From: Takakia lepidozioides
Lineage: Eukaryota > Plantae > Bryophyta
Assembly: GCA_030704615.1 (NCBI GenBank)
Contig: CM060733.1
Span: 30,132,001-30,196,000, forward strand
Length of the DNA stretch: 64,000 nucleotides
Direction of reading: 5' to 3'
A model generated the notes under the pieces. The model saw only the letters and a program-made list of their open reading frames with translations, was not told the DNA's origin and ran no database searches. Of this stretch, positions 16,064 through 61,294 are shown piece by piece. Within the stretch, counting starts at the first letter, position 1, and every line of letters starts with the position of its first letter. The position numbers were made by a program, and so were the translations under genes.

Positions 16064-18362
16064 TCCTTTTCCCCCAATATGGTGCGCAATATGTTTTCAG
16101 AAATGTTTTTTTCACAGTGCATAACATCAAGTATATATCGTATCAACAAATCCTGCAATCATGGAACCACCATCAATATGGTATACTTTGATGGTAAAGC
16201 CAAGAGATGACATCTTAATAATGGGAAAAAGAAGAAACCAGCCTTGCATGCTGCAGACAGTATCCAGAGAGACAAAAGCCAGACATTTTCATGGAAAACA
16301 ACCATATTGCTGCTACATGTGCCATACATAGGCGACTCCAAACTTGCTTCATGCAATTTGCATTAGGCTGAAATCTAAGTCGTGTGTGATGATCCTTACA
16401 ACTGTATCCATGCAACTATGAAATCAGCCCTGCCGACAAACAAACAATGAAGACATACCTACCTTCCAATATGGCAGGTTCCAAAAGATCGACCTTCGCT
16501 TCATGCCATGGGATTTGGCAGGGCACACATTCTGGCGACGGCTGCCAAATGTTTCCATGAACCTCTCGTTTTCCTCCGCATTTTGGAGCTGATCCACAGT
16601 GGATACTTGGGGGGGGGGGGGGGGGTCTGTGATCGGAGGCTCCATTGAAGTGGTTGCGATTGCGTCTATATGGATGGCCTGCTGGTAAGAATTTTCTGTG
16701 CCCCTGGTACACCATTTTGCTTAGTGCACTGGAGTGCCTGGCATCAAGATTGGGCCCACACACGGGACAAGCCTTGTAGCCCCCAACTGCACACCCTGCT
16801 AGCATGGCATATGCAGGATAGTCATGTACTGACCACATCAGAATGGCTCTCATGACAAAGGTCCTTGATCCTTCATTGCCAGATGCATCATTAGCCCTAA
16901 CACCTTCCCACAACACGGTCAGCTCATCCACCAGAGGCTGCAAGAACACATCCGCATTGGTCTTCGTCACAGATGTCGGCCCTGGAATTAAGAGTGTCAA
17001 CATCATAAAAAAAGGCTTTGTGCTCAGCCAAGGAGGAAGGTTGTAGTTCATGAGCAAGACTGGCCACGTAGACCATTTTGTTGATTTATCACCAAAGGCA
17101 TTGATACCATCCCATGCCAAACCTAGTCGCAAGTTGCGAGGTTCAGCTGCAAAAGCAGGCCATGTATCGTCAATGTATTTCCATGCAAGACTGTCAGGCG
17201 GGTGTCTCATCTTCCCATCTTGACTTTGGTTCTCCATGTGCCACACCATAAGCTTAGATATCTCCTTGCACTTGTACATGCGCTGCAGCCGGGGAATCAA
17301 GGGGAAATGCCGCAAGACCTTCTGTGGAACCAACGTCTTCATGCCAGGGATGTACCGAGGCGCCCCACATTTAGGGCAAGATGGTGCATCCTGCAGATCT
17401 CCCCTGTATAGCACACATCCCTTCTCACAAGCATGGATGCTATCGTAATTAAGCCCAGCTTTTGTTATAAGTTTCTTCGCTTCGTAATGAGATTTGGGCA
17501 AAAAGTTCCCTTTAGGCAATAGATATCCGTGAAAAAGTTTCAAAAGCTCATCCATCGCTGCATTTGTGACACCATGAGTAGCACTAACATTGAGCAAAAG
17601 CAACGTCGCACTCAAGCAGCTGGTGGGGCAGCCAACATATAGAGGTGTGGTTGCTTGATGCTGAAATTGGAAAGCAGCACCGTCATCCCCATCCCCATGA
17701 CTTTGTCCATCATGATGGCGCTCGTCTTCTCCAAGCCCTTCATCCTCATTAATGGTGCTTTGCACATTATCTGCAACTACAAATGTTTCCTGCAACATGC
17801 GAACGATGTCGACGTCGGGGTCTAGATTCTCTCCACCACGAACAGGAACAGGGCTAATCTGTCTTTCCACATCATCCTCAGGGGGGCTACGTTCTTCCAC
17901 AAAGTCTTCGTCTTCGGAGTCGACACTCTCCACCTGCATGTTCACCTGCAAACTATAAGAGTATAGTCTTGTCCAAAATGTAACGTGTTGCATAAAACAG
18001 GGAATCTCCAAATTGACCGTGCTAGTTTCCATACAGTAGTCCACCGTACATGTACAGTGGAGGGCCGTTCAACATTACCATTCTAAGGGCTTCATCCTAA
18101 GTTATGTCTGCGAGAAGTGAGGCGAGAGATGCACGTCACTCACCATGGGATAACCCAACAGTGGATCCCGGTCGTTGGCAAGCAAATGCAATTTGGCAGT
18201 TTCCACGAATTGGAGTCGACCCCCATGGCAGTCGTTGCAGGGACACATTATCTTTGAAATACCCAGTCTAGTTGCACGTCGTTCCTCGATTTGCCAAAGT
18301 CCTGCGTCAGTGTGGGGCACCGCAGTGCGGCGCCGGATGTTTCTAGTTCCGGCCTCTCTCAT
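16064..18362 (-). pseudogene. CACTA transposase (TnpD; Transpos_assoc + Transposase_21), 3'-truncated
   Basis: Exons ~18362-18144 (CPCNDC..H), 17945-~16464 (IHACEKGCVLY..CPKC; LRHFPLIPRLQR; RNLRLGLAWDGINAF; WSVHDYPAY) and 16152-16064 (LDVMHCEKNI). One frameshift at the G-run near 16608-16625. Confidence 0.9.
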
Positions 18363-18588
18363 CCCCCACGAAACGCTTCTGGGTTTGGCTAGTTTTTGAA
18401 GTGGGAAGTCAGCGAGTGCTCGGATGTGGGGAACCTACGTTTGTGCTTGTAGGCGTTGGAGTATTCGTATGGCGGGTCCACCTCCCCTCTGTTTCCTACA
18501 TGCGCTCCTTCTATTGTTTGATCAGTAGATCATGGTAGTCTTGTTTGAGGTCGATTACTGCGATTTGAGCGACGAGGAGGAACCCGCC

Positions 18589-30782: not shown

Positions 30783-33700
30783 CTATTTCCAGTAAGTTGT
30801 GGTGGGGTCACCATGCATGCAGTCTGGGTACTTGCCGGTCCACAGTATAATCTCGCTGAAGCGCTGCATCTGCTGCTCTACTGAAAGTTTGGAGACCCAC
30901 TGTGGAACAAACTCAGCTTGCTCTGTCAGCTCCGTTGCATACTCGTGAAGACGGTTTATCCTTGGTATTCTTATCTCCTCAAACCTGTTACCACATACAT
31001 GTGCAAGGTTCATGAATGATGAACAGCAGCCCCATCCAGCAACAAGTGAACTTCAGTGTCAGACGCAAGATATGAGCAGAATCTGTGACTGCGTGTCGTG
31101 CTCACACGTCAGAAGTAGAATGCAGGCCCTTGCAAGCAACCAGTTTATTATACTCAGATGGGCCCAGGTATATATGTAATTTATAACCAGAATCTGTGAA
31201 GGTACTGGATATTATATTCAACCACTGCTCAAACATCAGAGTAGCAATTGCGGTTAAAAGTCTAGCACTGATGACGTGTGAGTGCACAAGTATTGTAACA
31301 ACATGATGTTTGAAGTCTCCTTACTTGTGGACAGCTGCTGGAATGCTGTCCTCTCCCCGTGACTCAAAAGCCTTCTCCAGAAGGAGGCTGAGCTGATGTG
31401 CATCTTCAAATGCTAGCCGGGCCCCCATCCCCAACGATGTGTACATACCATGCGCGGCTGTTCACACAGTATGTGCAAGATTAGAGGTCAGTTGCCTGAA
31501 TATATTCGGAGGGAAAGAAATGGAAAAATCATAATGTTCATCCAGTCCCGTAGAGGCCAAACAGCTTATCAAGAGAGTCGAACAGAGAGAGAGAAAGAAA
31601 GAAGTACTAGACCGAAAGCAACTTCATAACGTCGGCAGCGGAAGGTCAAGGCCGACGGAAGGTCCGCTTGACGTGGTGTTAGTTTAGCTCTTGCCTAAAG
31701 AGTCTGTTCATGCGGTGGATGTATCCAGCCCTTGGATTTATATATACTCATCCCCCGCGGAATTCATTCTTCTCTTATTCATTGTGATTCTGAGGATCCA
31801 CCCCACCTGGTTACGTGGGACCCAGCACCGAATACCAGCAGGCACGATCCGGCATAACTGCAGCGAGATGAGTGTTCATGTATATACAGGCGTTTCGGGC
31901 GCTACAGTATTATAAAGCATGAGGTTGAATGTATTGTTAGACATTGTAGTCGTGGAGCTAGCTCAATTCTGGATCGAGATCAAAGGAAAAGAAAGATTGT
32001 GAGAGGCCCAACAGACAATCAACTCTTGTTCTCGAAACTGTGGTGACGGCTCACCACTGTGCCAGCACTATAGTGTAACTAATTACAGCTACATCTTTCT
32101 ATCTCTTTTGCAACTAGGATTTGGGGCTTGGTAGATTAAAGTGGCATGTCATGCCCCCTACTTGTTTTCTTCCTCCTCGGAGGATTCTTGGTTCTATTGA
32201 GTAAATCTCTTCCTTTCCCCTGCGGAGCAAAAGAACAAAAAGGAAAAGAAAGAAGGTGACACCTACCGTCCCCAATGAGCAACACATGGCCGTTAGCATC
32301 GCTCCATTTCTTCAAAGGCAAGCGGTCCATAGACCTCCGCTCATATATGACACTGTCATCGGTTGCCTTGATTGCTGAAATCAAATCCTCCCAGCCTTCA
32401 AGGGCGGCCAATTGCTGCAATGCCAGTGCTTTGGATTCACTTCTGTTAAATTTTCTTGACCTTTCAAGGAAGTCTTTTTGCAGCTCACCATTCGTATCCA
32501 GAACGCGCAAGTGCCATAGCACATAGCCATGCCCTGTTTCAAGTAGATAGTCATGGTCATGAGACCGAAGTACAGTGTTACAAACAAGCTGGGATATAAC
32601 TCCGGGGGAAACACGTCAAAGATGATCTAATTGAGTAGCCACCCTGGGGTTGTACCTTGATCACTGATAAACGCCACCACACGACCACTGGCTGCATGTA
32701 GCATTTGAACCTCATTTTTGCCATAGCGAAACAATCTGCCATGACGAACCAGGTATCAGATTTCAGACGAGTTCATAACAACTGGTCAATACATCCCTCC
32801 TGGCGGTCTGAACAACCTTCACGTAATACTATTATTTGAATCACATGTTCAAAGCTTATGACTAAAGTCTAAGCTTAGAAGGATTTCTTTGGTCAAGTGC
32901 TCAGTTCATCAGGAGAGTCAACGACCACTCACTTTGCCGTAGGCTCAAGGGTCACCTACTGGGCATGTACATCAACAAGGGCGCTTTTTGGGCCTAGAGT
33001 TGGTAAACCAAGAATCCGGAAAACGAACGAGAATGACTCACTCTCCATTAGGATTGTAGACGAATGCGTTCCAATTGACGAAGTTCAAGTAGCGGGGGGC
33101 ATCTCCTGGCACCATGGTTTTCCGCACCCCTGACCACATTCCATCGGCTCCTACCAAGAGCTTAGCTCGAACAACTTTTACACTGCCAAAGGCCTCCGAT
33201 AGGCCTTTTGTAATCTGAAACTCGATGTCCACACCTCCCTGCAAAAAGTGCACTCTGGCACAAGCTATTAAGCGACGTTCAGGCTCTGGGTTTCCCTTCT
33301 GGGTCCCCCCTAGCTGTGAGAGCAATGTCATATAAGCTTCCAAATTTATGTGCCACATGCATTCGAGAGGAAGAACTTATAGGACCAGGTCTATAACGAA
33401 CGATGCGATGATTGCAGTGATGTGGGTGGCGAAAAAGATTAAACACAGAGTTGAGAAAGACGAGTTGTCTGCAAATTCCGATCATGATTTAACTAAACCA
33501 TCAGAATTTTATGTGCCACATGCATTCGAGAGGAGGAACTTACAGGAGCAGGTCTGTAACGAACGAAGCGATGATTGCAGTGAACGCTCGACTTGTCCAA
33601 AAGGCTTGCCAAGAGCTCCTGCGAGAAGCGCCAGCCAATGACGACAACATCACCGATCTTGTGCCCTACTGGGATGACGATGTCTTCCTCGCCGTTTCTT

Positions 33701-34941
33701 CTTATAATTTTCTTCAAACGCACCTTATCGTTCCCCAAATCAATCATCTGTTCTGCTAGTCCGGGATGCAACCCGTCCAGTGCCCGTATACCTGCAAACG
33801 ATGAATACGAAGCTCAGCAATACTACATGATCTCAAAGAACATGCTAAATCCAATGCCAGATCTATAAAATTCCTACGTTTCTGAAGAGAATTCATCTTA
33901 TGGAGGACTCTCTGCTAGACTTGCCACATGTATACAGTTTTACCTTCCAAATGGACTTTCAAATGGACCTTGGAGCTCCTCATTATTCTGGTCCGACCAG
34001 ATGTTGTCCATGTGGCAAATGATTTCTCCCAGACCTACAGGTATGTTTGCGTTTATAGCGATGTAGTGCATGCAGTGAACTATATTCCTGTGTGTACATA
34101 GATCCATTTTTTCCAAATCCGGTCTTGTGTGGCGGGATTTGAGCTTCTGCAGCTTGTCTAAGGTAAGTCCGACTAATCGGCCGCTACACTCTCGTGCGAG
34201 AGCCCTACGTGACTGAGTTCTACTCTGATAGATTGTACATAACTTATACATATATATATATTTATTCACTGAGGTCAATATTGCTGGCCAACATTATTGC
34301 TCGTGCACTGACGCACCATGCAGCATATATGTGCATTGTGAAGTCATGAATCCGGCAGTTCGAATTGGGTGCGAACGTAACTTCGAGCAAACTGGACTGC
34401 ATGAGCCTGCCCAATTCACCTAGTGTATCCTCTATTTGCGTGTCTGGATTCCTCCTTTATGGGCGATGTTTGACATCTCACAGGTCTAGCTTGCACGGTC
34501 ACTTCTTACCTCAGAAGGTCAAATCATGTCCCCTTGCTGTCGATGAGTTGTATTCAATATTCAATACATATAATCTTGATCAATTTTAGAAGCGAATCCC
34601 CTCTCAAGTTCCCCTAGTCTTCCTGAAGAAGTTCCTCTACTGTTATCACTTGATTCACATGTGACTCCTAAAGAGTGGACCTGATGGCATAATATACCAT
34701 TGGGAGCCAGGCTAATGCCAGTGGCGGAGTCAGTGCGAAGAGCAGGAGCTTTTTCGAACACATGAGCCTGTATGCCTCTAGTCTGGAGGCCCAGCGCCAG
34801 CGATAGACCTCCGAGTCCTCCTCCGGCTATGGCAACGTCCACTTCCATCTCCACAGGTCCCCATTCACGGTTGTCCGCCAATTCCAAATGCCCGTTTCCA
34901 GTTGCTGGATCGACCATTCTCTCTGGCTCCTCCTGTTTCAT
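30783..34941 (-). CDS. Group A FAD-dependent monooxygenase (FAD_binding_3; ZEP/MO/UbiH-like), 7 exons, 456 aa
   Basis: Exons 34941-34698, 33791-33544, 33238-33042, 32735-32656, 32533-32267, 31457-31325 and 30984-30783 sum to 1371 nt with consistent phases and GT-AG ends. Motifs VAIAGGGLGGL, LLVGADG and LLIGDAAH..G.GA.LAFEDA. Confidence 0.92.
31535..32237. mobile_element. Possible solo LTR in monooxygenase intron 5
   Basis: TGTTC...GAACA inverted termini, internal TATATATA and an LTR-like GA tract; no TSD recognised. Confidence 0.35.
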
Positions 34942-42238: not shown

Positions 42239-45204
42239 TGTAGCGGGGCAGCTGTCAGGTCCCTGTCCCCTCTGCACCGTGCGGCCTCATTACGACGAGG
42301 CCTTACAAAATTCTGAGGCCTTGTACACCCACTTCACATATACACTAACACCCGAGTACACTGCCTTGACCTTGTGTTAGGGCACCCTCTTTATACAAAA
42401 GCCCAAGCTTTAGTTGCCCGCCGCGTGGCGAGGCGTCACAAGCCAAAACCCACAGTGCCGCTTTCTTACCCTAGATCTGATGAAGGGCCAGGATGTAGCC
42501 ACCAACCAAAACTAACCCTAACCTAGATATCATTGTAACGGTCTAACGGCTTTATACGCCAAAAAATTATACTATGGATGTGTATCACCGTTTTGGATGA
42601 AACGAGCCATTTCTAGCCTAGGCAAATATGAGCCATCACATCTGTGAAGCCTACCCCCCCACAAAAAATCCTGAGCTCCGCGAAGGAAAACAAATAATAA
42701 GGAAGTATCACCCTCCACTGCTGGGTGAAAAACCTACCAAGGGAAAACCTGGCACCTGCAAGTTGGGCCGAGGACAAAACCCTTGGCTAGGAAAACCGTG
42801 CAGGGAGTACAAATGGTGATATACCATGAAACTAAAATGTTTCTAAGTCCTAGAGAGGTCAAGTCCTAGGATCCCAAGAGTCACCATCCGCAAACTAAGA
42901 CTAAGCCGATGAAGAGAAAGAGGATCAAGCTGAAGTAGATCGGCTAAGAAGATCAAGACATCACCCCACCATGCGCCCCTCCACATTGATACATGTAAGA
43001 TCAAAAACTAGCTCGGAATGCACCAAGTCCGTCAAGGAAACAGGTTCATCCCACACTTCAATATTAGAGCCTTGTGGAAGAAAGAGAGCACGTCACCCAT
43101 GTAAAATCTGATAGATCAAGTATGGACCGTCGATCTTGAGCTTAGATTTGCATGCATGCTTGCCATGTTGTAATTGAACGCACACGATCTGTCCCATCTG
43201 AAACAGGTTAGAATACTTGACACGCTTGTTAAAATTACGGGCCTAGGTTAGCTGAGCCTTACCAATGTTCGTTTTGGCATCATGGATAGACACCGCATAC
43301 CAAGCATGAAGATCCTCAACAAAGGTATCAAGATCAACCGGATCAGCAACAGGTAAAAGGAGTAGAATGCAAAGGAGAAACACATTTGCGACCATACAAC
43401 AACTCAAAAGGAGTCTTCTTGGTGCTAGCATACACGGCGGTGCGATAAGCAAAGAGAATAGGGGGAAGAAAGGTATCCCATTCCCTGGTAAACTTGAGCC
43501 ATTCTTCTCCAATATTCGGCAAAGAGTCTGGTTGAAGCGTTCCGTGAGGCCATTGGTCTGGGGATGGTATGGGGCTATGGTGGAATGCTTAACACCGAAA
43601 TTGAAGCAAACTATCGTGAGGAACTGGTTACAAAACTCCTCGCCTTGATCCGTTAGTATCTCCCGAGGACACCCATGCCGCATAAGGATCTCATTGAAGA
43701 AGAACTAAGCTACAACATCACTAGCCTTGGAATGCAAAGGCCGGACTTCTACCCACTTAGTCAAGTAGTCGGTAGCAACACAAAGGTAGCTTCGACCCTT
43801 TGATGTGAGTGCGAGGGGTCCTACTAAGTCAATGCCAACACGAGCAAAAACATGGGTGACAGGCAAAGGCTGCAGCTCATACAAGATCCGGGCCCTAGGG
43901 AGAGCAATATTAGCACGACAACCTTCACACTTAGAGATGAATTTCGTGACATCTCGATGAATGCCCAGCCAATAGTAAACATCTTGGATGTCGGCCACGG
44001 TCTTCTTGATACCAAGGTGACCTGCATACAAGGAACAATGAAAACGCTCCAATAAAGCATTCAGCTGGCTCCATGGTGGCACCTCCAAATAGCATGGCAC
44101 TCCCCCTCTAGTGAGCTCCTTGAAAAGCTTATCACCCATGAAACGGTGAGTAGACACATGCTATAGAATTTGTTTACACAAGGACTTGGAAAGGCCAGCT
44201 GGCGAACGCCATGATTGGCATCGCTGGAGTAGCGCAGCATGTAGCTGATCATCCATGACTGTACTGCACATAAGAGGTAGACAATGAGCTTTAGAGAAGG
44301 TGGTCTGGAGTACCTGCACCTATAATCTCCAGCCAGGGATACCTTCACCTCATTTATTACTACTCATGACAGCCAAATCAGGCCTTGAGGCTCAAGCCAA
44401 TAATCACACCGAAGTGCAGCAGCCGGATTACAACATACTCGGGGGCCTAGGAAAGAGAAGAGCTGAAACACAACAAGGAACTTCCACCAAACCATCCGAA
44501 TTCTCTCTAGGCGATAGATCCACCACACATACTAACACACGAATAAATCAACCAGGATCATCAAGAAGGCTAGACTAGCCCCAAGCAGCCAATATGCCGT
44601 TGGAATCCAAGGCCAAGGGGTGCTGATTTGCACAAAGAAGGTTGAGAAGAGGAGCAGGAGCAGGAAGAGGGGTTGCATCTGCAGCAACAAGGTCATCCAA
44701 GGTGAGCTTAGGCCTGCTGACAGGAGGATCAACCCGTGTAAGTGCATCAGCATTTGTGTTCTCTTTGCCCTTCTTGTAAACTATATCCATGTCAAATTCC
44801 TACAGGTACATAGCCCACCGAGCAAGTCTGCCATGCAGTTCCCTTGGCTTCACAAGAGCCTTAAGTGGAAGATGATCAGTCTCTACCACAAACTAGCTGC
44901 CATGTAAATATTGCCTGAAATGCTTCAAACCAAATACTAAGGCCAGACCCTCCTTATCAGATATGGAATAGTTCATTTCATGACGATCAAGACGGCGAGG
45001 TGTATAAGCTATGACATGCTCCTTGCCTTCTACAACTTGACATAAGTTTGCAGAAATGGCAACATCCGATGCATCAGTCTGAAGCAAGAAAGATAATTCA
45101 AAGTTGGGAAACATCAGGCTGGGTGTTGAACACAAAGCCTTGCGAAGGGTGTCAAAGGCAGCTTGTTGGGAGAAGGTCCATTCAAACCTGGCATCCTTGC
45201 ACAA

Positions 45205-46444
45205 TACCTTCTTTTTTTATATTCCCAAAAGCTGGATGATTTTCGCACAGTACTTCACCCCGATATAATCAAGAAGTGCGAAACAGGAAGAGCTGCAGGC
45301 ACTTGGTATTCTTTGACTCGAGAGGCGTTTCTGGAGTACATGTATGCGGTAAGGCCGAGCCTGTACTCACTTGTCTTTTTGAATACATGTTTGTAATTCG
45401 TTTTTACTCATCCCTACTTTGATCAATGCAGCAAGAACTGGCAGAGGCAGCTGAAAGGGGAAATCCGTATACTACCACACTACAACAGAGGAACTTAGGA
45501 CATCAAAGGGTGTGGAGGCAGCAATAAAGAAGGAGTATGAATTTCGGAGAACCAAACTGATGTCCGCCTTCTCTAAGCAGCTTAGAATAGTAGATCCTAG
45601 CCTTGGCGAGGAGTTCCTTCTGCAGATCAAATCTCACTATGACACGCACGTGCACCCGGAGATGCAGCAGGAGAAATTGCGCTCATATCCCGCTCATACA
45701 CCAAGTGTCACCTGATAAGTCCACAGTCTCCCACTCTCATGCTCTCCTGCAACAAACACAACCTTGAGGTTCAATCCTCCAAAACCTGAGGATCGCCAGC
45801 CACCCGCTGGACTATCAGGATCCTAGAGACCTTTCTGTCACCAGCGCCAGTGCGTCAGGGTGGTGGGGCCAGGCTTGCCTACCCAGCCTCCAGCCCTATG
45901 TAGGTGACAGTGTGGTTTCAGTTGAGGTTTCCCAATATAAACCTGCCTGCACTTCGGAAGAATCTACTTCTCAAATTCACGACATAATTGAGTATGTTGA
46001 GAAGCTCCCGCCCAAACTTATGAACACCGATTTATTGTGCATTCCACAGCTGATCAAGACACATCTAGTTGTGATATTCTTTGCAAAAGCTGGCCATCTC
46101 TATGGTTGACCCCCAAACCAAAATTAGATGGCTGGAGATTTGGAACTCAGATCAGACAGTGAAGGACTTGAATCAGTTCTCTAAGAGCACTATACAGCCT
46201 GGCACAAAGGTGGAGGGAATCAGTGACATTGTGTTTGACAATTGGCTTCACAAGGCTACATTTTGGAGTCATGTGTGTATTCATTCAAGTTTCATCTTTG
46301 TTGACTTCATGAATGTAATAACTACCTTATTTGCAAAACAGACAAATGTACCCTTTTTAGTTGGAGAAACGCGCCATCCTTGTCCTCGAGCAGAATTTGA
46401 AGGACTTGAATATTTCTATTGTTTCCCCGCCTCAAATGACATTG
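45205..46444 (+). pseudogene. Intron-containing fragment inserted in the Gypsy pol gene, possibly a ULP1/C48 protease-like TE cargo
   Basis: GTAAGG..TGCAG intron near 45349-45430. DLLCIPQLIKTHLVVIF(L)QK..WLEIWNS loosely resembles the ULP1 IP..H...YDS segment. Confidence 0.3.
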
Positions 46445-47385
46445 CACTACAGCAAATGGGGGGGGGGGGTTGCAACGCCAGCCGCGCCCCCATGCCCCGT
46501 GCGGCGCCGAGCGTGCGACGCCAACCCCGCGGAGCGTATTTGCGACGCCGGGCAGTCGCCGCCAAACCCCGCGGGCCGCCACTTGGCGCCGGGGCCAGGC
46601 GGCGACACCTGGCCGTCGCACGGAGTGATGGAGGGCAAATGGCAGCCCTTCCATGCGACGCCCAAGCATTGCCCCCAGCGAAGGGCAAAAGGCAGCCCTT
46701 TCGGGCAACGGCCGCTCATCGCACGCCGGAAAAAAAAAAAAAACCCCCTTCGTTCATCGCAGCCCTTTCTTGCGACGTCAGGCCGTCGCATAGTGCCATG
46801 AAAGGCAAAAGGCCCCTGCGACGGCCGGGCGTCGCAAATTGCCCGGCTGCCCTATTCTTGCAAAAAACAAAATTGGGTCACAGTGTGCGACGGCTGGCCG
46901 TTGCCGTGTGCAACCCCCGGCCTCATAAATCCATTCAAAAAAACTGGTCGCAGATGACGACGGTTGGCCGTCGCCGTTTGCGACCCCCGGCCTAAAAACT
47001 GCGTCGCAGGTGGCGACGCATAGGGGTCGCAGGCAGCGATGGCAGGGCTTTCTAGATTTAGGTTTAGGGCCTTTGGGGGTTCTTAGTTTTTTTTTTTTTT
47101 CATATGGTACTGGGATAGGGTGTTTGTTTTTCTTTATGGTTTAGCTTGTTGTTGTGGACCTTCTTGTAGATTGTGACATTCATTTTGATAATTCTCTTGA
47201 TACCACATATGTATGTATTGCTCCAACATATTCATTGCCTCTGCCTTCTTTCTTGAAAGACTATCAGCCACAGCTATATTTGATGAATCATTGAAATAAA
47301 CTACAATATGCATGTATATGTACAATCAATCGAAGGGATGGGTCCAGTTCGGTGCGAGAATTGTTATGTAGCTTTGATTTTGTGT

Positions 47386-49697
47386 CTAATCAACTTGAAC
47401 ATCATCATCCAGAGCCTCTTCATCCTCATCAAGCTGCAAGTTTTCTTGGTCATCGGAGTCATCGTCATAAATGGCCTGGCCCTCAAAAGGCACCTCCGAA
47501 TCAATCCTCCACCTCGTTGTCAATGGCCGTGTCTTTGTCTCTTTCTCCAACATCTGTATCTTCTCGAGCTTCATCATATAGGGTCCAGGATGCATTGTCT
47601 GGGGTGTCATCATCCTCTTCTACCCCCTCTACCTAACCTCCATCATCAGCATCATTATGACCAGTCTCTCCGTCCACCGTAATTGCCTCACCCCATGGAG
47701 ATCCGAGACCATGATAGATACGTCTTCCTCTTGGCTGAGCATGCACAACCACCTTCCAATTCCCCCCTCTTGTTTTGTCATCGGAGAAGAAAACTTGCTC
47801 CATGTCTGAAAGCCGTGAAAAAGGCTCATCGGAGGGACGATGAGTAGGGTTGAGCCTATCTGCATTGACGCGCATGAAACCACAATCATCTTGCACTAGT
47901 GTTGCGGAGCGCCCCACAAGATGTGGCTGGAACCACCTTCCTTTGAAGAGAAGAAGCCGGTACCTTGTATACTGAAGTTGGAGTATGTTCTCATGCTCTC
48001 CAATGTACTCAAGTTTGCTCATAGCAAGTCGTGTATCTCATTTGCCCCACTCGGAGTCTTGCCAATATGTGGCACACAAGCCAGAATCAAAGGTTGTTTT
48101 GTGCTTCATGTCAAGAGCACGAATGCGGAAATGACGACCGTGAACCCAAACCACCGTGTATGAGGTTGCGAATTGAGAAGGGCCCCTTGCAATGTCTTGC
48201 ACCAAATCTGAAACCACCTCTTCTTGAGCAACGGCGTCATAAACTGAAGTCATGCGCTTGCTCAATCACCAAGGTCGGCGATTTTTGGGGCAAAACGATG
48301 TCATTGGTTTGTGCATCCTCCTCTTCCTTCCACATCCGAGGGGCTTCCTCATCCACCCTTGCCATGTACTCCATGCAATAGAACATAGTTTCTTGCAACG
48401 TATACCCCTCCGCCATGCTACCCTCCGGGTGCGCAATTTGTCTTACAAATCACTTTGAAAGCAAGATGCCTCTCATCCGAAAAGATTGTCCGGCCATAGG
48501 GTCAAGTGAAGCATCCAATGTCGGGACCCCCCTCCATAGCTCTTTAAGTTCATCAACAAGAGGTCGCAAGTACGTGTCCATGTTTGCCACTTGTTTTTTC
48601 CCTATGAGATTTTCACATCATTGTTTCAATGCTCCACCAATATGCGGATTATTCTACAAAATGAATTACACGTCTTACTCCATGATTATGTCACTCATCA
48701 ATCTTGCATCCGAATTGCGTCAAAGATCAGAAGTTTAATGTAAAGTCGAAGGCAATAATAAACATGAAATGAGTACACTCACCTGGCACAATGGCAGCCA
48801 ACATGATATGGCATTTTTTAATTGAAAGATACGGAGGGATGTTGTAATTCACCATGGTCACCGGCCAAGTGGAATGACTACATGACTGGATAGAGAATGG
48901 GTTGACCCCATCCGAGGAGAAGCCGAGGTGGACATGTCATGGGTCCTCCAAGAGAAAAGGCCACATCTCTTCAATATGCCTCCATGCTTGTGAATCTTGT
49001 GGCCTGCACACCTTTCCCGGGGGGCTCCGATGCGAGGCGTGCCATCTCATGAGTCTGGCCAATTCGGGGCTTCGGTACTGTGCCCTCAATCGCGGGATGA
49101 TCGGAAAGTAATGCATTTTCTAGGATGAAATACCCCACGCCCCCCACATGTAATCATCCCATTAGTACACATAATACAACACCCTTATGTCTTTCCCTTT
49201 ATGCAGCCTCTCCCTCATTTGGGTGTGAATGGTCAAAACTATATGTCGCTTCTTCCACTCCTCACTCACTCCTTCCAAAACCACAATCAGATCTTGCATG
49301 AGTACTACTCTCTAAACCCTAAACTTTGTGGAACACACTTTACATACATTGAGAAGATTAAAGAAAATAATCTCCATGCGAGGGGGAATGGCGCTTATAC
49401 CTTGCGTGGTACTTTTTTCCCTTGGACATCATCCCGATATCGGTCTTTCTTGCACTTTGGGCACTTGGTGAGATGCGAATCCTCTCCGTAGTATAGGGTT
49501 TTATCACATGGACATGCATGAAAAATCTTATAGCCCATCCCCATAGAATCCAAGACTTCGCGCGCCTCTTTCCGCGATCGTGACATCTTGGGTTTCAAGT
49601 GTGGAGCAAGGATATAGTCTGCAATAGTTTGCATTATGGCAGACATCCCAACATTGTTTATGCCAAATCGAATTTGAAGATTGAGCAAAAGCCCCAA
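47386..49697 (-). pseudogene. CACTA transposase remnant (Transposase_21, DUF4218/DUF4216 parts)
   Basis: FHACPCDKTLY..CPKC..VPRK; HYFPIIPRL; LGFSSDGVNPF; YLRPLVDELKELW; FVRQIAHPEGSMAEG; LLFKGRWF..DEPF..QVFF. 5' end and middle are deleted. Confidence 0.88.
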
Positions 49698-49904
49698 TCT
49701 GGGAAAATGGTGCCGAATTTCTAGTTCAGGGCCCCGAAATGGCTAAGTCATTGGGGTGGCTGGCACCGAAACTAGAAATTCAGCGCCATTTTTCCACTTC
49801 CGGGCCTAGTCAGTTCGGCGTCTATTCGGCGTGCATTTTGCAGTTTTATTCCCTAAAATTTACCTCGTTCCCGGGACCTCATTCTGTGTGTTTCTTGAAT
49901 GCAG

Positions 49905-51613
49905 GTACTGCAACTTCTCCCTTTTGGAGAAAGGTCATCTGTCCTTTGAGCCGCCATTCTTCCTCGTATGGAGGAACCCTAGGGCTGACTCCATGTACAC
50001 TGACGTTATCGTGAAGGAGTGGCATCTGGAACATTTGCGCGACTGCCCTTGGTATGTGGACCTTCCGCCCGGCTCGCTCGACTCATCCGAGTTTCAATTG
50101 AAGCTGGATGCTGAGGCTCGACGAAACCGGGCTCCGCTGCCTCCGCTGGGTCCAAAGGAGGCGAAAGCACTTGCCAAGTCCAAGAAAGCGGCAGAGCTTG
50201 CTAAGGCAGGTATTCAAGAGAAATTGAATGAGAAGAATAAATGACAAAAGAAAAGGACACGGAAACAGGGGCAAAAAATAGAAAACCACCGGGGCACCAG
50301 AGGAGGCGCAGGAGGGGCCCCAAGGGAGTGACTCCGATGACGACTTTGTGCAAGGTCCTGCGACTGCTGCAACTGCTACCAAGTCACCGGTCGTCCGGGT
50401 TCCCAAGTCAGTTCGGACTGGGACTGACTCTGCCAAGAAGTTTGGCATATGAGGGCGAGCCTACACGGCGGTATTCGGCGGTGACGTTTCCGAAGAAGCC
50501 AAAGCTAGAACCCCCAACCATCATCCAATGTGTCAATGAGAGCTTCCTTGACGCTCTGGCTGCCAGGGCGAAGAAGGTGGCACACAGCAAGTCTGTGGCG
50601 GAACAGAAGGGGAAAGCCAAGAAGATGGCTCCCAGTACAGAGCCTAAAGACACCCCTGGTTTTGAATCCATGATGGAATTCTTCACGGCTGTGAGCACGG
50701 ATTGCAAGAGCACTCGGGGGGGGTGAGGTGGAGAGATCTTGCGATATGATTCTCCTCGATATTCCAGATGGGGAGCTGCTGGAGGGCCTGGATGGTGTGC
50801 CCACCTGGAACAGGTTCACTAAGGACTACTGGAGAGCCGGGTTTGGGCTGGCGGGGATGCTCCTGGATGACGGTGGATGTATGGTGGTCCTTGCCACAAG
50901 AGGGAAGACCACAGACAATGCTGTAGCAAGGTGGACACCGAAAAGTGTCACCCCGGTCCTCCTCAAAAAATGGTTCTGCATCAATACGCAGGGGTTGCGA
51001 ATAGAGGGCCAGAGTGTAAGTTATCAATCTATTGCATTCACTTCATATTGTGGTGTATCTGAACTAGACCCTGGAGTTGATCCCTCTTTTGTTGGATGTG
51101 CAGACATTGGTGTTTGAGGCATATTGTTTTGTGAAGAGAGGGTCTACGTTCAAATTCCGCAATGACGGTCGTCTTGTTGATGCCGCTGTGGACCCTGTTA
51201 CCTACGATGTCCTCTACAACTATGTGCCCTACTCCAGTATGCCGAAGGACACAAAGACAGGCAAACCATGGCGGTACAGCCGGACCCGGAGCCCTGCTTT
51301 CATCCAAACCCTCATGGAGACGTGCTCGGATGTCCAAGGGCGGATTCTTGACCTCACATGCGGCACGGGTAAGCCTTCACGTGCACAGTTTGTCCCCTGG
51401 CCCGATTGCAATTGCATGCCGCATGCTACTAACTGCCCGCTTTGTCCCTCAGGTGCCTCAATGTGGGCAAGGACGTTGTCCGACAGGCATGTCTTTGCTT
51501 TTGAGCCAGATACTGCCCTCCACAACTCCGAACTTGCAGCAGCTGAACGTCTACCGAAAGAGGAAGAGGCATCCTCGGAGGATGAGGAAGAATCCGACAA
51601 GGAGCAGGAGGAG
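49905..51613 (+). pseudogene. Transposon-borne beta-class DNA N6-adenine/N4-cytosine methyltransferase-like gene (5'-truncated, frameshifted upstream of the MTase domain)
   Basis: Motif IV-like DMILLDIPD (DIPD at 50758-50769) precedes KPWR..SPAFIQTLMETCSDVQGRILDLTCGTG|ASMWARTLSDRHVFAFEPD (motifs X, I, II). Introns 51016-51103 (phase 0) and 51369-51452 (phase 1, TACTAAC branch site) splice in frame. Confidence 0.72.
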
Positions 51614-54600
51614 GTACAAGTTGGGATCGAGGCGACGTGGCAGATGACGACGCAGTGCCACGTCAGCATTTGTCGCCATATCAGCCTGCTGACATCATGC
51701 TCACGCCACGTCAGCGTGGGTGCATGTTCACGCCACGTCACTCCTGTGTGAGCGTACGCTCGCGCGCTCACGCCATTGCGTCGTTGCTATATTAAGAAGC
51801 GAGACCAAGGAATGATTTGATACAATGTTTATCCCAGGGAATATGAAAGTCCCAAACAGACTCAAGCTTTGTAGGATCAGGAAGCAAACCATCCTTGGAG
51901 AGGATATGACCAAGAAAGTGTAGTTCAGGCATGAACAGCTTACACTTCTTTGGCTTCACTTTGAGGCCTGCTATGCGCAATTTGCTGAAAACGCACTGCA
52001 GGTCAGTCAAGTAGGCATCAAAACTGGCTGAATACACATTGATATCATCTACATTCATCCTTCTTGGTGATGTCATTCAGTTTCCTGAAGTCAACACAGA
52101 AGCGTGTGGTGCCATCTTTCTTTCCAACCAGAACAATTGGACTAGCCCAGGGAGAAACTGATGGCTTAATCACACCAGCATCAAGCATTTTCTGGACTTC
52201 CTCTTGGACTATAGCACGTTCCTTGACACTCTCTCGGTAATCAAATTGTTTGATAGGAGGTCCTTCGGTAACAATGTCATGTTGAAGAATGGGAGTGCGT
52301 CCTAAATCAGTGGACCCCAAGCTGAAGACATCTAGATTCTTGCAATAAGCATCTCAACTCTCTTTCTTTGCCCTGAGGAGAGGGTGGTACCCAACTTGAT
52401 TTCAGATAGCACTTTGGTGAGGACTTTCTTACCTTCAGGACTGAGATCAGAGACAGGTGGTGGTGCAATTGCAGCAAAGGCATCCAAGGGGCCATGTTGT
52501 ATGCCTATGGCCTCTAGTCCAAAGCCTCTAGAGGCCTTTCAGGAGGCTTGAACAAGGTCTTAGCCCATTCTATAAGGGTCGCACAATTGAGGCTGGGATC
52601 ATCCATGACTATTGCATGCAGCAAGTCCCGGGCTGACCCCTTCATGCTCATCTTAAAGATGGCCATTTTGAAGTTCTCAGGCACTCCATTTACGCTAGCA
52701 ACGACTTCAAACATTTGAAGGTACCTATCAAAGTCTTCTCCCATAGTATACTCTGGATAGGGTTGAGTGGTGAGCTGAGGGATCAGATGACAAGACAGAC
52801 TGTGGTTTATGTGCCCAGGAAGAACATATGCATGAGTAGCGCAGCAGGGAACAGTGGCCTGAGTAGGAACATAAGTGCTACTGGCAGCATGTATAGGATT
52901 AACAGCAGATGCAGTACTTTCGCAAGAAGTGGATGATCTGTTGTATGAGATATGTGATGAGGATCAGCTTTGGTTTGAGCGTATAGAAAGGGTTATCGTG
53001 GGTGACCTTGTTGTGTTAACCAGTCATCACGAAGCCCTGTTCACGAGACCTTTGCTTGAGCCTGGTGCAGTGGCGTCCAGAGCCAGACAGCTTGCTAGGC
53101 GAGAATTCGAGCTACGTAACAAAGAACGTTTGCCGTCCAGAACAATTACGTCGCGTTTTCTGCATCATCGAGAATTGACCTGGTTAGAAGTAGGTTTGTA
53201 TTTGTCTCTCTCTGGTGTTCGAAGTGCGGAGCTTCATCATGGCCCTAGTTTGGTAGGGCGAAGTTGGTTGTCGTTGATGTTACAAGGCACGGGGGCTTTG
53301 ATCTTGAGGGCGTTACGGTTTCAGCTCCGACCTTGCGCCTTGGCGCCTACTTATTCACAGTTGGTTGATGGTTTGAAGGGTAGGGCCTTGACAGTGCAGT
53401 CGTCTGATCTGGTAGTCTTGGGGGTGGGTACTACCTTTGCTTCACAACGGGTGGTTGGCCCGAGTGCATTTGAGAGATTGAGTGACTATTCGAACTCGGC
53501 TGTGCTTTCGCACACGTGGAGAGAGGGTGACACAACCCGCGTAGGTTTTGGCTTAAGGAAGCTGACGGTTGGGAGTGGCTGGCGTTGGGAGTCTACGAGC
53601 TGCAGTCACACAAGGTGCTGAAGGTGGTGTATTGTTTCACTTGGGTTCCAGAGGTCAGCTCGCCGAGCGCTCGGCCCACTCTCCATATTCCTGCTGCTTA
53701 AAGGTTAACTTTCCAATCTACTTTCGTTTCTTGCATGCTAGGTGATTCAAGAACTACTTGGCTGAGATCAGGAAGGCAGAGGTCCATGAATAGTTCAGAG
53801 GAGCCGCTGGCCGAAGGTGTAGTAGAAATGAACAAGGGATTGGACAACCTGCAAGCAGGTAATTTTGTGGCCAATGATGATGAATTTTGAACGATGGTAC
53901 GTTGGGAGCGGTTGTAGAATCCCCAGCTGGTATTGCGTTGGTAGATAAGGGTTCTGGGATAGCCAACCCCGAGGGCCTCTCTGCTTATGGTCGAGGTAAT
54001 GAGGCCATGGTGGCTGGACAACCTGAGCCTACGCTGGCTCGGGAATTGATCGATCTGCCCTCCCATCCTGTTCATATTCAGGGGGTAGACAGGTATGGTT
54101 CGGATGTTTGGGCTACTATGAGCGGTATGCCAGCCCCAGTGACAAGTATGATGCATGTGCCTGTGATTAGTCTCCCTAATCCCACTCTCGAGGGAGGGAC
54201 TAGTTCTTTGAATTCAAGTTTGCATCCGAGTACTGTCCCTTTGTTGAATGTCTCCAGTCTTGCTGCGGGTGGGGGGACAGTAGAATCAGTGCCCTCCACC
54301 TCGTTTGTTGGTCATGCACGTCATGTGGGAACTCTTCCTATTCAACAGATGGGGAGATTGCCATAGACTGCAGCTAATCAGGCTATAGGTACACATGCTA
54401 GCAATGTCAATACTGTCCCTGTTCATGTTGGCAATTTAAGCTCTAGAACAGCTCATATGGTGGGAGTGACATCCACTCCTCCCATGAGTGGTGTGCCATA
54501 GCCCCACCTACAGTCGGTTTACCCGGCAGCTTAGTCAAATGTGGTGTCACAACTCGATATCTCTCTCTAACTCTGATGCCTGCTTCCTACTCTCAAAATA

Positions 54601-56422: not shown

Positions 56423-59400
56423 TCTCTCCCTGTCCTCTAGGAAGCCTATTGACATTGGGTGGACTTGAAACGGGAGTACATTAATGTTTCTGTGACTAAA
56501 TGCCGGCCTTGTGACCTCGTGTCCTTGTTTGTTTCGACCTGAAGCGCTTTGCTTCAGGTAAGGTAGTGCATTGGATTTAGTTGGAAAGCTTGGGGCCTTT
56601 CCCTCTTTAGAATATGCCTACACGGGCCATTCCCTGCAACTCCCTGGAGTGTGATCTCTGAATGGTAACAAGCGGACTCCTACCGCTTGGGGGCAGCCCC
56701 TCCGCCCAAATTGGGCAGTCGTATGCTCTGTCTAGCATACTCGGCACTTGGGCTCGGGTTGGTTACTGTGCTTAAACTTATGGCCTGCGAACACAATCAA
56801 AAATTTAGCTCCTATCAACATCAACACTCCTCAGGGTGATCCCTGGGAATTGGTTACTTATGCCAAATCTAGGGCTTCATGTGTAGTTTTTGGGGTGAAT
56901 CCCAGGATGGACGATGTGTCCTTTAAAACTACATGCTCTAGCTTAGGCTTGGATTTCATGGCTAATGGTACCATCTCGAGACTTGATAACAGGGGTACGT
57001 TGAAGGTTGCAATGACCAAAAGTGCTTCTAATAGAGTCCCGCATCAATTCAATCTCAAAGAAGTTCGTCCCTTGACTGGCTGGAGAGCGGTCTTAGACAT
57101 TGGTGATTCAATGGGGCGCTCTAGGAAGACAACCAAGGGCAACAACTTCAACTTGAGAGTTTCTAATCAGTTTGATGCTCTGGATGAGGTTGAATCCAAA
57201 CAGCCAGAAGGACAAGATGCCCCTAAGTGTACGGAACCTGAACGTCCTGAATCTGAAGGATTTGGTACTCTGAATGGTTTACCAATCCTCAAGGTTTACA
57301 CAAGACGAACAAATTCTATACACGGGGTAATTGTCCCCAAGCCGTCAGATGGACAATCTGTCCCTAAGTGTGCAGAGCCTGAACGTCGTGTAACTGAAGG
57401 ATTTGGTACTCTAAATGGTTTACCAATCCTCAAAGTCTACACAAGACGAGCAAAATCTATACACGGGGTAATTGTCCCCAAGCAGTCTGACGGACAATCT
57501 GCCCCTATGTGTGCGGAGCCTGTGCGTCGTGTAACTGAAAGATTTGGTACCCTGAATGGTTTACCAATTCTCAAAGTTTACACAAGACGAGCAAAATCTA
57601 CACATGGGGTAACTGTCCCCCCTTTGCAGAACGGTTGGCCGTCCAGGAGCAATCACAAGCTACCTAGACGACAAACAATTCACACGCAAAGGGCTGGCTT
57701 GCGGCTGGCCACTTTCAACTTCTCAGGGTTGACCAACCAAAGGAAACAACTTGAAGTGGGACAAGTTCTTCGGACTAATGATATTCATATCTGTGCTGGG
57801 CAAGAAACATGGGAAACGTCGGATAAACTGGTTGGAGATGTCATTGGTTATAAATGGGCAGGTAAGATGTGTACTCTCAAGGCAGCCTCTGCCAAACGCG
57901 GTCAAAAAGGGGTTGGATTCTTTGTCCGTGATTTCTTGTTTGACAATTGTGAAATTATCAACAAGGGTTTGAGGTACGAGCATAGTATCTGGCTAAAACT
58001 GAATTTGAAGGGCGGCATGAGTACAAAGGACCTCTTTGTTGGTTGTGTTTACATGCCCACAGAGGGGACCCTTAGTGCTGACGCAGACAAGGCCTTCGAA
58101 GATGTAAAGCTGGACTGTGCTTCATTCCTTGCCAAAGGTCAGGTGGTACTATTGGGGGACTTCAATGCCCGGGTGGGCAAAGGGATCCATCAGGACGATA
58201 TCATTGGACCTTTTGGTGAGGACGAGCTGAATTCTAATGGCAGACGGTTAATTAACTGTCTAGAAGAGCTTCAGCTTTTGACCTTGAATAACAGGACAAG
58301 AGGTGACCAAGTGCAGTGGACTCGTGAGAAATCCCAAACTGGGGAACGTTCCATTGTGGACTATATCATAATGGACAAAATTTTGTTCCCCCAGTGTGCC
58401 AATGTGTTGATCGACAGAACTGATATTGGTACCTCTGACCACTTCCTGGTTTGGACTGAGATCAAAAGGTGTTTTCCCACCACCAAGAGATCTGTGAAAC
58501 GTTCGATTCGGAAGTGGCGCATAGAAAAATTCCACAATGAGGAGGTCAAGGCTGAGTACGTCCAGGCCTTGCAAGAGGCTCTCCCTCATTTTGTCCAATC
58601 GCTCCAAGAACTTCAGTCACGCTCTGTTAACGCAAGAAATGAAGTCGAAAGAGCAGTGGACTCTTGGGAGAGTTTCGTTTCCTCCGTGGCTGACAAGATC
58701 ATTGGGAGGAAACTAATTGTCTGCGGTAGAGCAGTTAATTGGTGGACTAATGAGATTAAACTCAAGATAGCTGAGAGACGAGCCCTCTATAAAGAGTGCT
58801 GCAATTTGGAAACCAACAGAGAATTGTGGGCGAGGTACTACCAGCTCCGTAAAGATATCAATCAGCTTGTTAGGTCTCAGAAGAAATTATACTGGGACAA
58901 GTTATACAGTGAAATAAACTCAAACCACCATGGTGGTAATGAGAAAGAAATTCTGGTTGGCCCTTCAACGTTTGTACAAACCGAAAAACGGTCAGCAAGT
59001 ACAAGCGCTGAAGACTACTAAAGGTGCAGTGGTGACTTCATCGCTTGACATTGTCAAAACCTTTGAAACTCACTACAGTATCCTTGGCAGAACTTCTAGG
59101 TCTAAGAGTGAGGGGTCTTCTGCTGAATGGAGGGACACAGTTGGAAAAACTGTTCCTATGATTCAAAACAGCCCTGATGAACTGGAGTATATTTCAATGG
59201 CTTATAATGCTCCCATTAGTTCTTCTGAGATTGTGGAAGCAATTGCACATTTAAATGGATATAAAGCTGGTGGACCTGATGGTATTGTCAACGAGCTTAT
59301 CAAGCACGGTGGCGATCCCATGATAGAGGCCCTAGTTCTCCTCTTTAACCTTATCTGGAAGACTGAAATGATCCCCTTTCGCTGGCGACAGGGGGTCATT

Positions 59401-61294
59401 GTCAATCTATACAAGAAGGGTGACAGAAGAACCGGGGAACTACCGTGGCATCACGCTCCTCAATGCTGTTGGCAAGACATTCTGCAGAGTTATAAGTACT
59501 CGTCTCGAGGTTGATCTGGAGTCAGAGGTTGTTTCCACAAAGGCCAAGCTGGCTTTCGGCGAAACAGGGGCTGTGTGGATCATATCTTCACTCTAAGCCA
59601 GATTATCCAGGGAAGGAAAAAAGAAGGGAAACCCACTTATGTCTTTTTCCTGGATGTCAAAAAGGCTTATGACACAGTGTGGAGGGATGGCCTATGGTTC
59701 CGCCTCTGGTCTTGGGATCAAGGGAAAGATGTGGAGAGTTGTCCACAACTTGTATGCTCACACCAAAAGCTGTGTCACTGTTAACGGACAGAAGTCCAAC
59801 TTCTTTGACATAGACCAAGGTGTAGCTCAATGATGTACTCTCTCCCCTCTGCTCTTCAATGTTTTCATCAATCAACTCCTCGAGGATGTGGAAAGTGAGG
59901 GATTTGGGTTAAGGGTGGGTGATACCACCATACCAGCCCCTATGTTTGCGGATGACTTCGCAGGCATAGGGGAGACTCCAACCAATCTCCAGGAGTTGAT
60001 TGATTGCGCGAAGAGATACTTTGATCTTTGGGGGCTAGAGGCTAATGTCAGCAAATGTGCAGTGGTAGCATTCAACGACAGAGGAGAGGGAGGAAGTGAT
60101 CTTAAGTGGCAGTGGGGTAGCCAAGAGATCCCGGTCCTCCCTTCCTACACTTACCTGGGCGTTGAGTTCTCCTCCAATTGTAATTGGGATGCACATATCC
60201 GGAAAGTTGTTCAAACTGGCAAGGGCAAAGCTCTGGGGCTCACTAAATTTTTCCACTGCAGAGGGGTCAACTCTGAGGTTAAGAAAACGATGCTTTGTCG
60301 CGTTATTAGACCTGCCTTGGAGTACGGATCTGCTATATGGGTTGATAACTCCAACCAGGCTAAGTCTCTAGAATCCATTCAAGTGGGGGTGCTTAAGGAG
60401 TGTATGTCAGCATGCTCCAAAACAGCCAATGTGGCTGTTCGGGGTGAGTTTGGCATTCCGTCCTTAAGCTCCCGACGAGATGAATTCAAGGTCAGATGGT
60501 GGGGTCAGCTGCAACATATGCCCAACACCAGATATCCTAAATTAATCGACTCTATATCTTGGAAACAGGACCGCCCTGTCAAACAGGCTAAGTCCTGGCA
60601 GAAGAGAGTAGAAGAGATCCTCAAGGACCTGGACCTGGATCCGCAAGTCTTGACCCTGCTGGATAAATCTGACTTAGAGGCTGTAGTGTCCTCAGCCATG
60701 TCTGTTGCCATGAGATTGTCTGATGAAAATGGAGTTAGGCAGAAAACTTCCCTGAACTTGTTTCCAGTCTGTGACATGGGGGAGGACATCTTGGATGACC
60801 TCAAGGGTCTACCCACTCTCGGCACTAGACTGAAATTTAAACTCAGGGCAGGAAGCCTACCTTTGAACAGCAAACAGAAGCAGAGAGGAAAGGGAGAGTG
60901 CAATTGCCCGTTGTGTGGGCAATCTGAAGACAATATTCATTTTCTGATACACTGTCCGGGGTTCTCTCACCAAAGAGACGCTCTCTTCAAATCTATTAAG
61001 GGAATTGTGCCTGTACCCCTGTTTACCAACTTTGAAAGTCTCAAGGCTGAGCCAAAAGCCCAGGCCCTCCTGAGGCCTAGTTTTTGGGCAAATCACACAC
61101 AGCAGATTGATGCTTGTGTGAAGGGATTTCTAGAGGATATCTGGAAAACCCGGATTAATTCTTTATATGGAGGTAAGTCTTACTACCAACGTCAGCCCCT
61201 GACAGAGGTAGGTTCTGTCCCTTTTGTTCCCGCTCAAACTGGGCGCAGGGTCAATGGCCACAAGGCTACGGCAAACAACGTCTTATGAGTACAA
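56423..61294 (+). mobile_element. Near-full-length non-LTR retrotransposon (RTEX/RTE-like: APE + RT + C-terminal CCHC) with a 14-bp TSD
   Basis: LATFNFSGL, GQETW, LGDFNARVG, SIVDY, TSDH; GNYRGITLL; FLDVKKAYD; QGVAQ*CTLSPLLF; MFADD; YTYLGV; CPLC..EDNIHFLIHC. TSD TCTGTTATGAAGGT at 56409-56422 and 61295-61308. About four frameshifts and one stop. Confidence 0.92.
57206..57620 (+). repeat. In-frame 141-bp (47-aa) tandem repeat, ~3 copies, in the LINE N-terminal region
   Basis: CCTA(A/T)GTGT at 57222, 57363 and 57504; peptide P(K/M)C.EP.R...E.FGTLNGLPILKVYTRR..S.HGV.VP three times. Confidence 0.92.

Follow-up and report, generated by a model that had tools for sequence, protein, structure and literature searches.

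Positions 49905-51613 of a 64,000-nt stretch of Takakia lepidozioides DNA (Bryophyta; contig CM060733.1, positions 30,132,001 to 30,196,000, forward strand; the whole stretch is referred to below as the window) were found to be, very probably, the rear portion of a truncated and dead gene copy; the gene itself, an accessory gene with introns and a high copy number, would belong to a DNA transposon family of non-seed plants. The gene extends from at least 45512 to 51630, and the last ~250 residues of its protein appear to form a permuted domain like that of beta-class DNA amino-methyltransferases. Judged from its sequence, the product is similar to bacterial enzymes of this kind, yet the catalytic motif usual for them is missing. 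A first-pass annotation had described the region as a CACTA transposon carrying a spliced methyltransferase gene. The spliced, methyltransferase-like gene of a repeat family was recovered, whereas CACTA did not hold up as its carrier; the locus is a dead fragment, and a CACTA element with a methyltransferase gene as proposed does not exist here.

The gene lies on the plus strand. Its long exon (exon A, 49905-51015) encodes a conserved region, of unknown fold, and a linker that leads to the methyltransferase-like domain, the N-terminal half of which lies at 50728-51015 and has the tetrapeptide DIPD at 50758-50769. In exon B (51104-51368), the variable region comes to its end and is followed by the motif X helix and the first part of motif I (ILDLTCGTG). 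Motif I is completed in exon C (51453-51630), which further encodes motif II (FAFEPD) and the acidic tail. Between the three exons lie two canonical GT-AG introns of 88 nt (intron 1, 51016-51103) and 84 nt (intron 2, 51369-51452), as had been predicted at first pass, and the motifs quoted there (DMILLDIPD, KPWR, ILDLTCGTG|ASMWA and RHVFAFEPD) are all present in the sequence.

Contigs from four public runs were aligned to window positions 49600-51900. One X9 contig (record 26, 770 nt) covers 50717-51015, 51104-51367 and 51452-51614 in one piece, joining the exons with both introns absent. Another (record 25) covers 49902-50682 and extends 255 letters upstream of 49902; therefore the acceptor 49904|49905 is used and further 5′ exons exist. 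The upstream exon of this RNA-like contig was sought in the window and not found. At the start of intron 1, the homology of other plants' fragments stops at the same point, and intron 2 occupies the same position in the relatives P0005, L003 and L010 and is absent from P0009/L001. The family is thus probably transcribed and spliced, with the reservation that X9 is taken as RNA by guess only. Intron 2 is also open in frame: its retention would add 28 residues to the loop that binds S-adenosylmethionine (SAM), without a stop codon.

The gene had been thought to start at 49905. Orthologous genes were available on a metagenome contig (L003) and a Logan contig (L005), and a tblastn comparison of their open reading frames (ORFs) with the window gave matches further upstream, at 45614-45679 (E 0.006 and 0.44, respectively) and 46081-46287 (E 1e-9 and 6e-9); both are collinear with the exons downstream. 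These matches correspond to exons at ~45512-45679 and 46081-46290 in a 5′ part of the gene (45277-46444, plus strand), which is truncated just downstream of the site at which relatives have a ParB-like exon; the relatives have more exons upstream. Downstream, 49894-50115 matched L003 with E 7e-7, and exon B matched the same contig with E 6e-13. Taken together, the ORFs of L003 and L005 form one collinear series with the window: 45614-45679, 46081-46287, 49894-50115, 50743-50940 and 51086-51394. A metagenome scan with a narrow alignment returned one locus.

The interval between the second and third of these blocks is occupied in the window by a nested CACTA (En/Spm) fragment (46445-49688, minus strand) with one end (CACTACAG...) and transposase remnants. 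The latter comprise DUF4216 (47633-48022, E 1.3e-7) and pieces of Transposase_21 (48450-48590, E 2.4e-8, and 48727-48861), all on the minus strand; the transposase N-terminus and the second end are missing. In L003 and L005, which are collinear with window positions 45614-46287 and 49894-51394, there is no CACTA DNA between the two parts, only a few hundred bases with one more exon, and therefore the CACTA piece was inserted into the gene. What this comparison of sequences establishes is the insertion of a CACTA element into the gene and its later truncation; the element entered at 46445, and its far end was lost afterwards.

The contrary proposal, in which a single CACTA element runs from its left end at 46445 to a right subterminal cluster at 51630-51790 and carries the methyltransferase gene as cargo, is very improbable. 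It does draw on a true CACTA end, on subterminal repeats and on Tnp2/DUF4216 remnants that adjoin the gene, and a second gene on the plus strand would not be odd, since both strands of the CACTA-type element at 16416-21302 contain genes. Exons of the same gene, however, stand to the left of the CACTA end (45614-45679 and 46081-46287), collinear with the CACTA-free L003 and L005. No right inverted end matching the CACTA end at 46445 was found in the window. The CACTA subterminal palindromic repeats are confined to 46540-46975 (13 matches vs 0.02 expected) and are absent from the right cluster, where the repeats at 51634-51790 have a different motif. Contigs of the CACTA family part from the window after 49688. 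A CACTA cargo gene would be recognized by its position between two matching ends with shared subterminal repeats and a 3-bp duplication; no such arrangement was observed, and the duplication that flanks the block measures 9 bp, whereas CACTA elements make 3-bp duplications.

The second CACTA-type element is an observation in its own right. Its divergent genes are a minus-strand Transposase_21 ORF of 542 aa (16416-18044, E 2.8e-70) and a plus-strand ORF that matches Transposase_24 (20088-21302, E 2.8e-5).

The methyltransferase relationship was clearest for the C-terminal half of the domain. An exhaustive HMMER search over 1.84 billion representatives, with the stop-free ORF 51077-51748 as query, retrieved 12 short proteins (best E 3.4e-14), all of which match exon B only and end at intron boundaries. 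One relative, P0009, is 39% identical to exon B of the window (E 4.9e-5 library-wide); it has no intron 2 and therefore reads on through motifs I and II. P0009 matched the Pfam family N6_N4_Mtase (PF01555) with E 7.6e-6 over profile positions 159-219 of 221 and five PHROG DNA-methyltransferase families with a lowest E of 1.8e-7. Among solved beta-class enzymes, it matched M1.HpyAVI/DpnA with E 0.002 at the homologous C-terminal place; the matches to CcrM (E 0.19) and M.MboIIA (E 0.33), at the homologous C-terminal place as well, were non-significant. All 30 of its nearest ESM-Atlas clusters were N6_N4_Mtase (score 0.95). In a profile comparison by hhalign, the exon B/C family profile aligned to residues 286-357 of the Vibrio phage VHML methyltransferase with E 4.3e-5.

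Motif I and the acid of motif II are present in the window (ILDLTCGTG|AS and FAFEPD) and in relatives (V(V/L)DLTxxTG, and GRHFFGIEE or CRHFLGFEED), with the first glycine of motif I variable across the family. These results support, by sequence comparison, homology between the SAM-binding C-terminal half and the motif X-I-II half of beta-class N6_N4 methyltransferases. Within exon B, DVLYN was tried as a candidate for motif IV and rejected, being too near motif X and having an alignment score of -0.4.

Several observations weigh against the assignment and were taken into account. All sequence and structure searches were run exon by exon or on natural fragments. A Pfam search with the exons of the window (E up to 10) and two upstream ORFs gave no match, and the score of P0009 against PF01555, 26.5 bits, falls just below the gathering score of 26.7. 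A search of PDB sequences with the 224-aa ORF of the window returned only a low-complexity match to selenoprotein S, and a word-based protein search with this ORF and with the exon A ORF returned nothing. Since the window's own exons have no Pfam match, the methyltransferase assignment is drawn from the family members. The AlphaFold model of the C-terminal half is of low confidence (pLDDT 61 and 63 for the two half-domain models), and when both models were compared by Foldseek/VIA, methyltransferases stood at the top of the rows, but all matches were weak (E >=0.3, Z <=3.8) and are not evidence on their own.

For the N-terminal half, a small alignment of pieces from the window, L003 and L002 was used as the search seed and retrieved 18 more fragments. 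These 18 relatives of exon A and the 12 of exon B are all short fragments from plant-derived contigs. When exon A of the window was compared by hhalign with a family profile built without the window, the probability was 96.9% and E 1.6e-10. An hhalign comparison with residues 27-117 of VHML placed four motif blocks in register, although its E of 0.15 is not significant: VDLVIAD-x-P vs VDLIATDPP in block 1, the tryptophan of P-x-W-N in block 2, YLHDDGALLVF vs ILKPSGSLYLF in block 3, and W-x-x-x-N vs W-R-K-E-N in block 4. The AlphaFold model has the expected succession of strand, loop, helix, strand and helix, and its best Foldseek/VIA rows were mostly permuted DNA N6-methyladenine (6mA) methyltransferases (MTA1, M1.HpyAVI, M.MboIIA, M.BceJIV and CcrM).

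On the other side, the pLDDT of this model is 61, a low confidence, and its structural rows are weak (E >=1.5, Z <=3.8). Searches of PDB and Pfam with the family profile of exon A returned nothing, and neither sequence nor structure comparison (hhalign, PDB, Pfam, Foldseek and VIA) linked the N-terminal half significantly to any methyltransferase. According to the alignment and the predicted model, the half keeps the strand-loop-helix-strand layout together with the motif order. The order given at first pass, with motif IV followed by target recognition and motif I, is matched, with statistical significance for the C-terminal half only.

The motif IV site was compared in 19 sequences, namely the window and 18 relatives. 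In place of (D/N/S)-P-P-(Y/F/W), the family has the pattern D-x-P-[D/E/S/K]-G, and the fourth position is aromatic (Y, F or W) in 0/19. The tetrapeptide is DIPD in the window, DIPE in five sequences, and DMPE, DAPD and DFPD in two sequences each, while DYPD, EYPD, DAPS, DTPS, DLPK, DIHE and DVLE occur once each; it is always followed by G-L-P-V-P-like residues. Motif I is conserved as D-L-T-x-[G/S]-T-G, and the acid of motif II is kept. Since no aromatic residue occurs in any of the 19 sequences, DIPD represents the state of the family and not a decayed canonical site, contrary to the hint that it had arisen from DIPY, which is one base away.

Pairwise ratios of nonsynonymous to synonymous substitution (dN/dS) in the domain were 0.25-0.34 between L003 and L010 and 0.08 between L002 and L005, which are diverged lineages. 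With values of this size, the protein has therefore been maintained by selection, the domain being under purifying selection between lineages.

These data bear on the question of enzymatic activity. An unlikely alternative to a fold without canonical activity is that the unusual motif IV still permits DNA N6A/N4C methyltransferase activity, with the element methylating its own DNA. It is favored by the conservation of motif I (D-L-T-x-G/S-T-G), of the motif II acid and of the first Asp of motif IV, by dN/dS values well below 1, and by transposon proteins of like design in algae, which have been proposed to modify their own element (PMC12477816; bioRxiv 10.1101/2025.02.11.637652). Against it, all characterised amino-methyltransferases stack an aromatic residue on the flipped target base, and 19/19 fragments lack this residue; the first proline is replaced as well.

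In the preferred reading, that of a methyltransferase-like protein with a non-canonical site, the product would bind SAM and act on the palindrome arrays of its own element, and it would not be expected to follow the canonical mechanism for methylating adenine N6 or cytosine N4. It would be a non-catalytic binder of DNA or chromatin, or else an enzyme with an altered substrate. A more specific form of the latter, to which little credence is given, holds that DNA transposons of land plants keep under selection a SAM-binding methyltransferase-like protein with a new active-site signature, D-x-P-[D/E]-G-L-P-V-P, active on a non-canonical target or placing DNA marks by an altered mechanism, at their own palindrome arrays. 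If this were true, the family would represent a transposon-encoded self-marking system in bryophytes. Whether transposons mark or shield their own DNA in this way or have turned a dead enzyme fold into a reader can be tested from the gene family, given copies more intact than the present one.

Together, the gene fragment and the CACTA piece make up a single 6.5-kb insertion (45277-51790) in the pol gene of a Ty3/gypsy retrotransposon. It is flanked by 9-bp duplications read from the sequence, ATCAAGAAG at 45268-45276 on the left and ATTAAGAAG at 51791-51799 on the right, which match at 8/9 positions. Both parts of the interrupted pol gene lie on the minus strand. The downstream part (43243-45267) contains the RNase H (45204-44893) and integrase regions: RT_RNaseH_2 in ORF 45201-44893 was matched from profile position 1 (E 7.2e-30), and the integrase at 44157-43243 was matched by Integrase_H2C2 (E 9.5e-16) and rve. 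Its frame continues up to ~45262. The upstream part (51800-52320) contains the end of the reverse transcriptase (RT) domain, with RVT_1 matched in ORF 52076-51792 at profile positions 153-205 of 205 (E 5.3e-8), and the RT ORF starts immediately at the right duplication. The pol gene is split yet otherwise uninterrupted, and thus the block is one insertion. A Helitron-type insertion was considered and rejected; it needs no duplication and fits the gypsy frame worse than the 9-bp duplication does. The first bases of the block (CGAAACAGGAAGAG, 45279-45292) resemble the exon C acidic tail at 51555-51568 (13/14 match), probably by chance (E 0.12).

At its right end, the block contains a repeat-rich region of 157 bp (51634-51790) with four GCCACGTCAGC-like copies and a GAGCGTACGCTC palindrome. 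This region has a high copy depth in the contigs, and a deletion specific to this copy has joined it to the gene; other copies have different sequence before it.

Target duplications are 9-11 bp long in Mutator elements and 3 bp in CACTA elements. The pair ATCAAGAAG and ATTAAGAAG falls in the Mutator range, and the carrier may accordingly be Mutator-like, the 9-bp duplication being the sole basis for this. Other features of the block count against a Mutator carrier: no inverted repeat was found between its two ends, and its left end falls inside the gene. No Mutator-like element (MULE) transposase was found within the block. The window copy is a deletion derivative, and its lack of inverted ends and MULE transposase cannot decide the matter for the family; the metagenome and Logan contigs with relatives are <=5 kb and too short to reach a transposase.

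The abundance of the family was evident from the DNA run X1, in which 6852 contigs aligned to the stretch at >=80% likeness; therefore the stretch belongs to a very high-copy repeat. Within the window, no further copies of the gene were found. A host (domesticated) gene disrupted by transposons, instead of a transposon gene, would also account for conserved intron positions, purifying selection and spliced transcripts. This explanation is nevertheless highly unlikely, given thousands of DNA contigs of 80-99% likeness in one plant sample, a copy that is truncated at both ends and lies inside retrotransposon pol with a target duplication, and relatives that were recovered as short, repeat-like fragments, several per sample.

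The damage to the window copy of this transposon gene was assessed against contigs of other copies, and the earlier statement that the copy is broken upstream proved accurate, the stop codon and both frameshifts being real. The stop codon lies at 50242-50244 within the long exon, which also has 1 extra nt at 50441, and the G-run at 50715 is 2 G shorter in the window than in other copies. With these two G, 50241-50726 and 50728-51015 are in one frame in the other copies. Exon C ends ~9 codons short of their stop, and the X5, X9 and X10 contigs diverge from the window after 51629-51633. The window copy thus lacks its 5′ exons and has one stop, two frameshifts and a 3′ truncation, and it would yield no functional protein.

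In the intron before the long exon, a single hairpin or palindrome unit of 126 nt was found (49689-49816). Its 36-nt arms (49691-49726 and 49770-49805) are 81% complementary, and the predicted DNA fold has an energy of -29.1 kcal/mol (z -3.65). Other copies have it in arrays: five DNA contigs step back by 126, and loose ends show inverted units next to it.

Upstream in the orthologous gene on L005, ORF 713-1558 was observed to contain a ParB/Srx-like GxHR box (GNHR) in FYVYEGNHRVTAWKRH. In intact elements, a ParB-like N-terminal part would be added to the protein, as is suggested for relatives. The case for it is tempered by the searches: the ORF has no Pfam match and only a weak ParB-like match in PHROG (E 0.23), it matched nothing across the whole window, which indicates that the window does not contain this part, and the ParB-like part had no match in PDB. 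Pfam searches with the upstream exons (window, L003 and L005) found no ParB domain.

The metagenome contig L010 (features at 445-720 minus, 1406-2413 plus and 2856-3873 plus) carries two methyltransferase-like gene copies on opposite strands. Between the copies, in a rearranged context, lies an ORF of 335 aa that matches DUF7869 (E 2e-45) and, with MDNC... and GHTHEDVD, looks like a DDE transposase. A weak remnant of a DUF7869-type ORF is present in the window at 31300-31425. No mention of DUF7869 was found among the papers searched.

Accessory proteins with ParB-like and N4C/N6A DNA methyltransferase parts, located beside inverted-repeat arrays, have been described for Sola1-1_Ec32 of Ectocarpus (PMC12477816, where cases from green and red algae are cited as well). 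The same protein design occurs in Plavaka PAG2/PAG3 of Bostrychia and in giant Plavaka/Mutator elements of Chondrus (bioRxiv 10.1101/2025.02.11.637652). Compared by description only, the Takakia gene is alike in being a transposon-borne, intron-bearing accessory gene with a prokaryote-type methyltransferase-like domain, in having inverted-repeat arrays beside or inside the gene, and in the upstream exon with a ParB-like GxHR box in its relative L005. It differs in belonging to a land plant and in its motif IV, D-x-P-[D/E]-G; in addition, the ParB-like part is absent from the window copy and weak in L005 (E 0.23). The window copy is a further member of the kind published for algae. Among the papers searched, there was no report for land plants and no description of a bryophyte Mutator element with a ParB-methyltransferase protein. 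Repeats of land plants, too, therefore keep prokaryote-type DNA-methyltransferase-like accessory genes, as recently published for algal transposons, spliced and under purifying selection and, in the land-plant family, with a conserved non-canonical catalytic loop.

With the beta-class enzymes (M1.HpyAVI/DpnA, CcrM, M.MboIIA and VHML), the family appears to share the permuted order of motifs IV and V-VIII followed by C-terminal X-I-II, and its C-terminal half is homologous to theirs by profile. In contrast to them, it lacks (D/N/S)PP(Y/F/W), scores just below the Pfam gathering threshold, and has introns, a long N-terminal extension and a location in a eukaryotic repeat.

Eukaryotic genes of prokaryotic amino-methyltransferase ancestry are also known as host genes. 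The bdelloid N4CMT is one of them, with a canonical motif and demonstrated N4-methylcytosine (4mC) activity. Compared by description, it and the Marchantia genes MpDN4MT1a/b resemble the Takakia gene in this kind of ancestry, whereas the Takakia gene belongs to a high-copy transposon and has a non-canonical site. MpDN4MT1a/b are likewise host genes, with the canonical motif TSPPY and demonstrated 4mC activity (bioRxiv 10.1101/2021.02.12.428880).

The fold of the MT-A70 clade (Tetrahymena MTA1, METTL3/14) is permuted in the same way, and MTA1 gave the top, but weak, structural rows for the N-terminal half. There was no match to this clade at the sequence level, and it is N6_N4_Mtase rather than MT-A70 that the C-terminal half matches. 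Among the members of the clade are non-catalytic partners in which motif IV is degenerate, such as METTL14 with EPPL.

Two further features were noted elsewhere in the window. A LINE-like (long interspersed nuclear element) pair on the plus strand (56748-61288) consists of an endonuclease/exonuclease/phosphatase ORF (56748-59021) and an ORF with a weak RVT_1 match (59888-61288). On the minus strand, ORF 34561-34941 starts with a Rossmann motif for binding flavin or nicotinamide adenine dinucleotide (FAD/NAD) and matches FAD_binding_2 with E 1.6e-5; a host oxidoreductase gene may be the source of this exon-like ORF.

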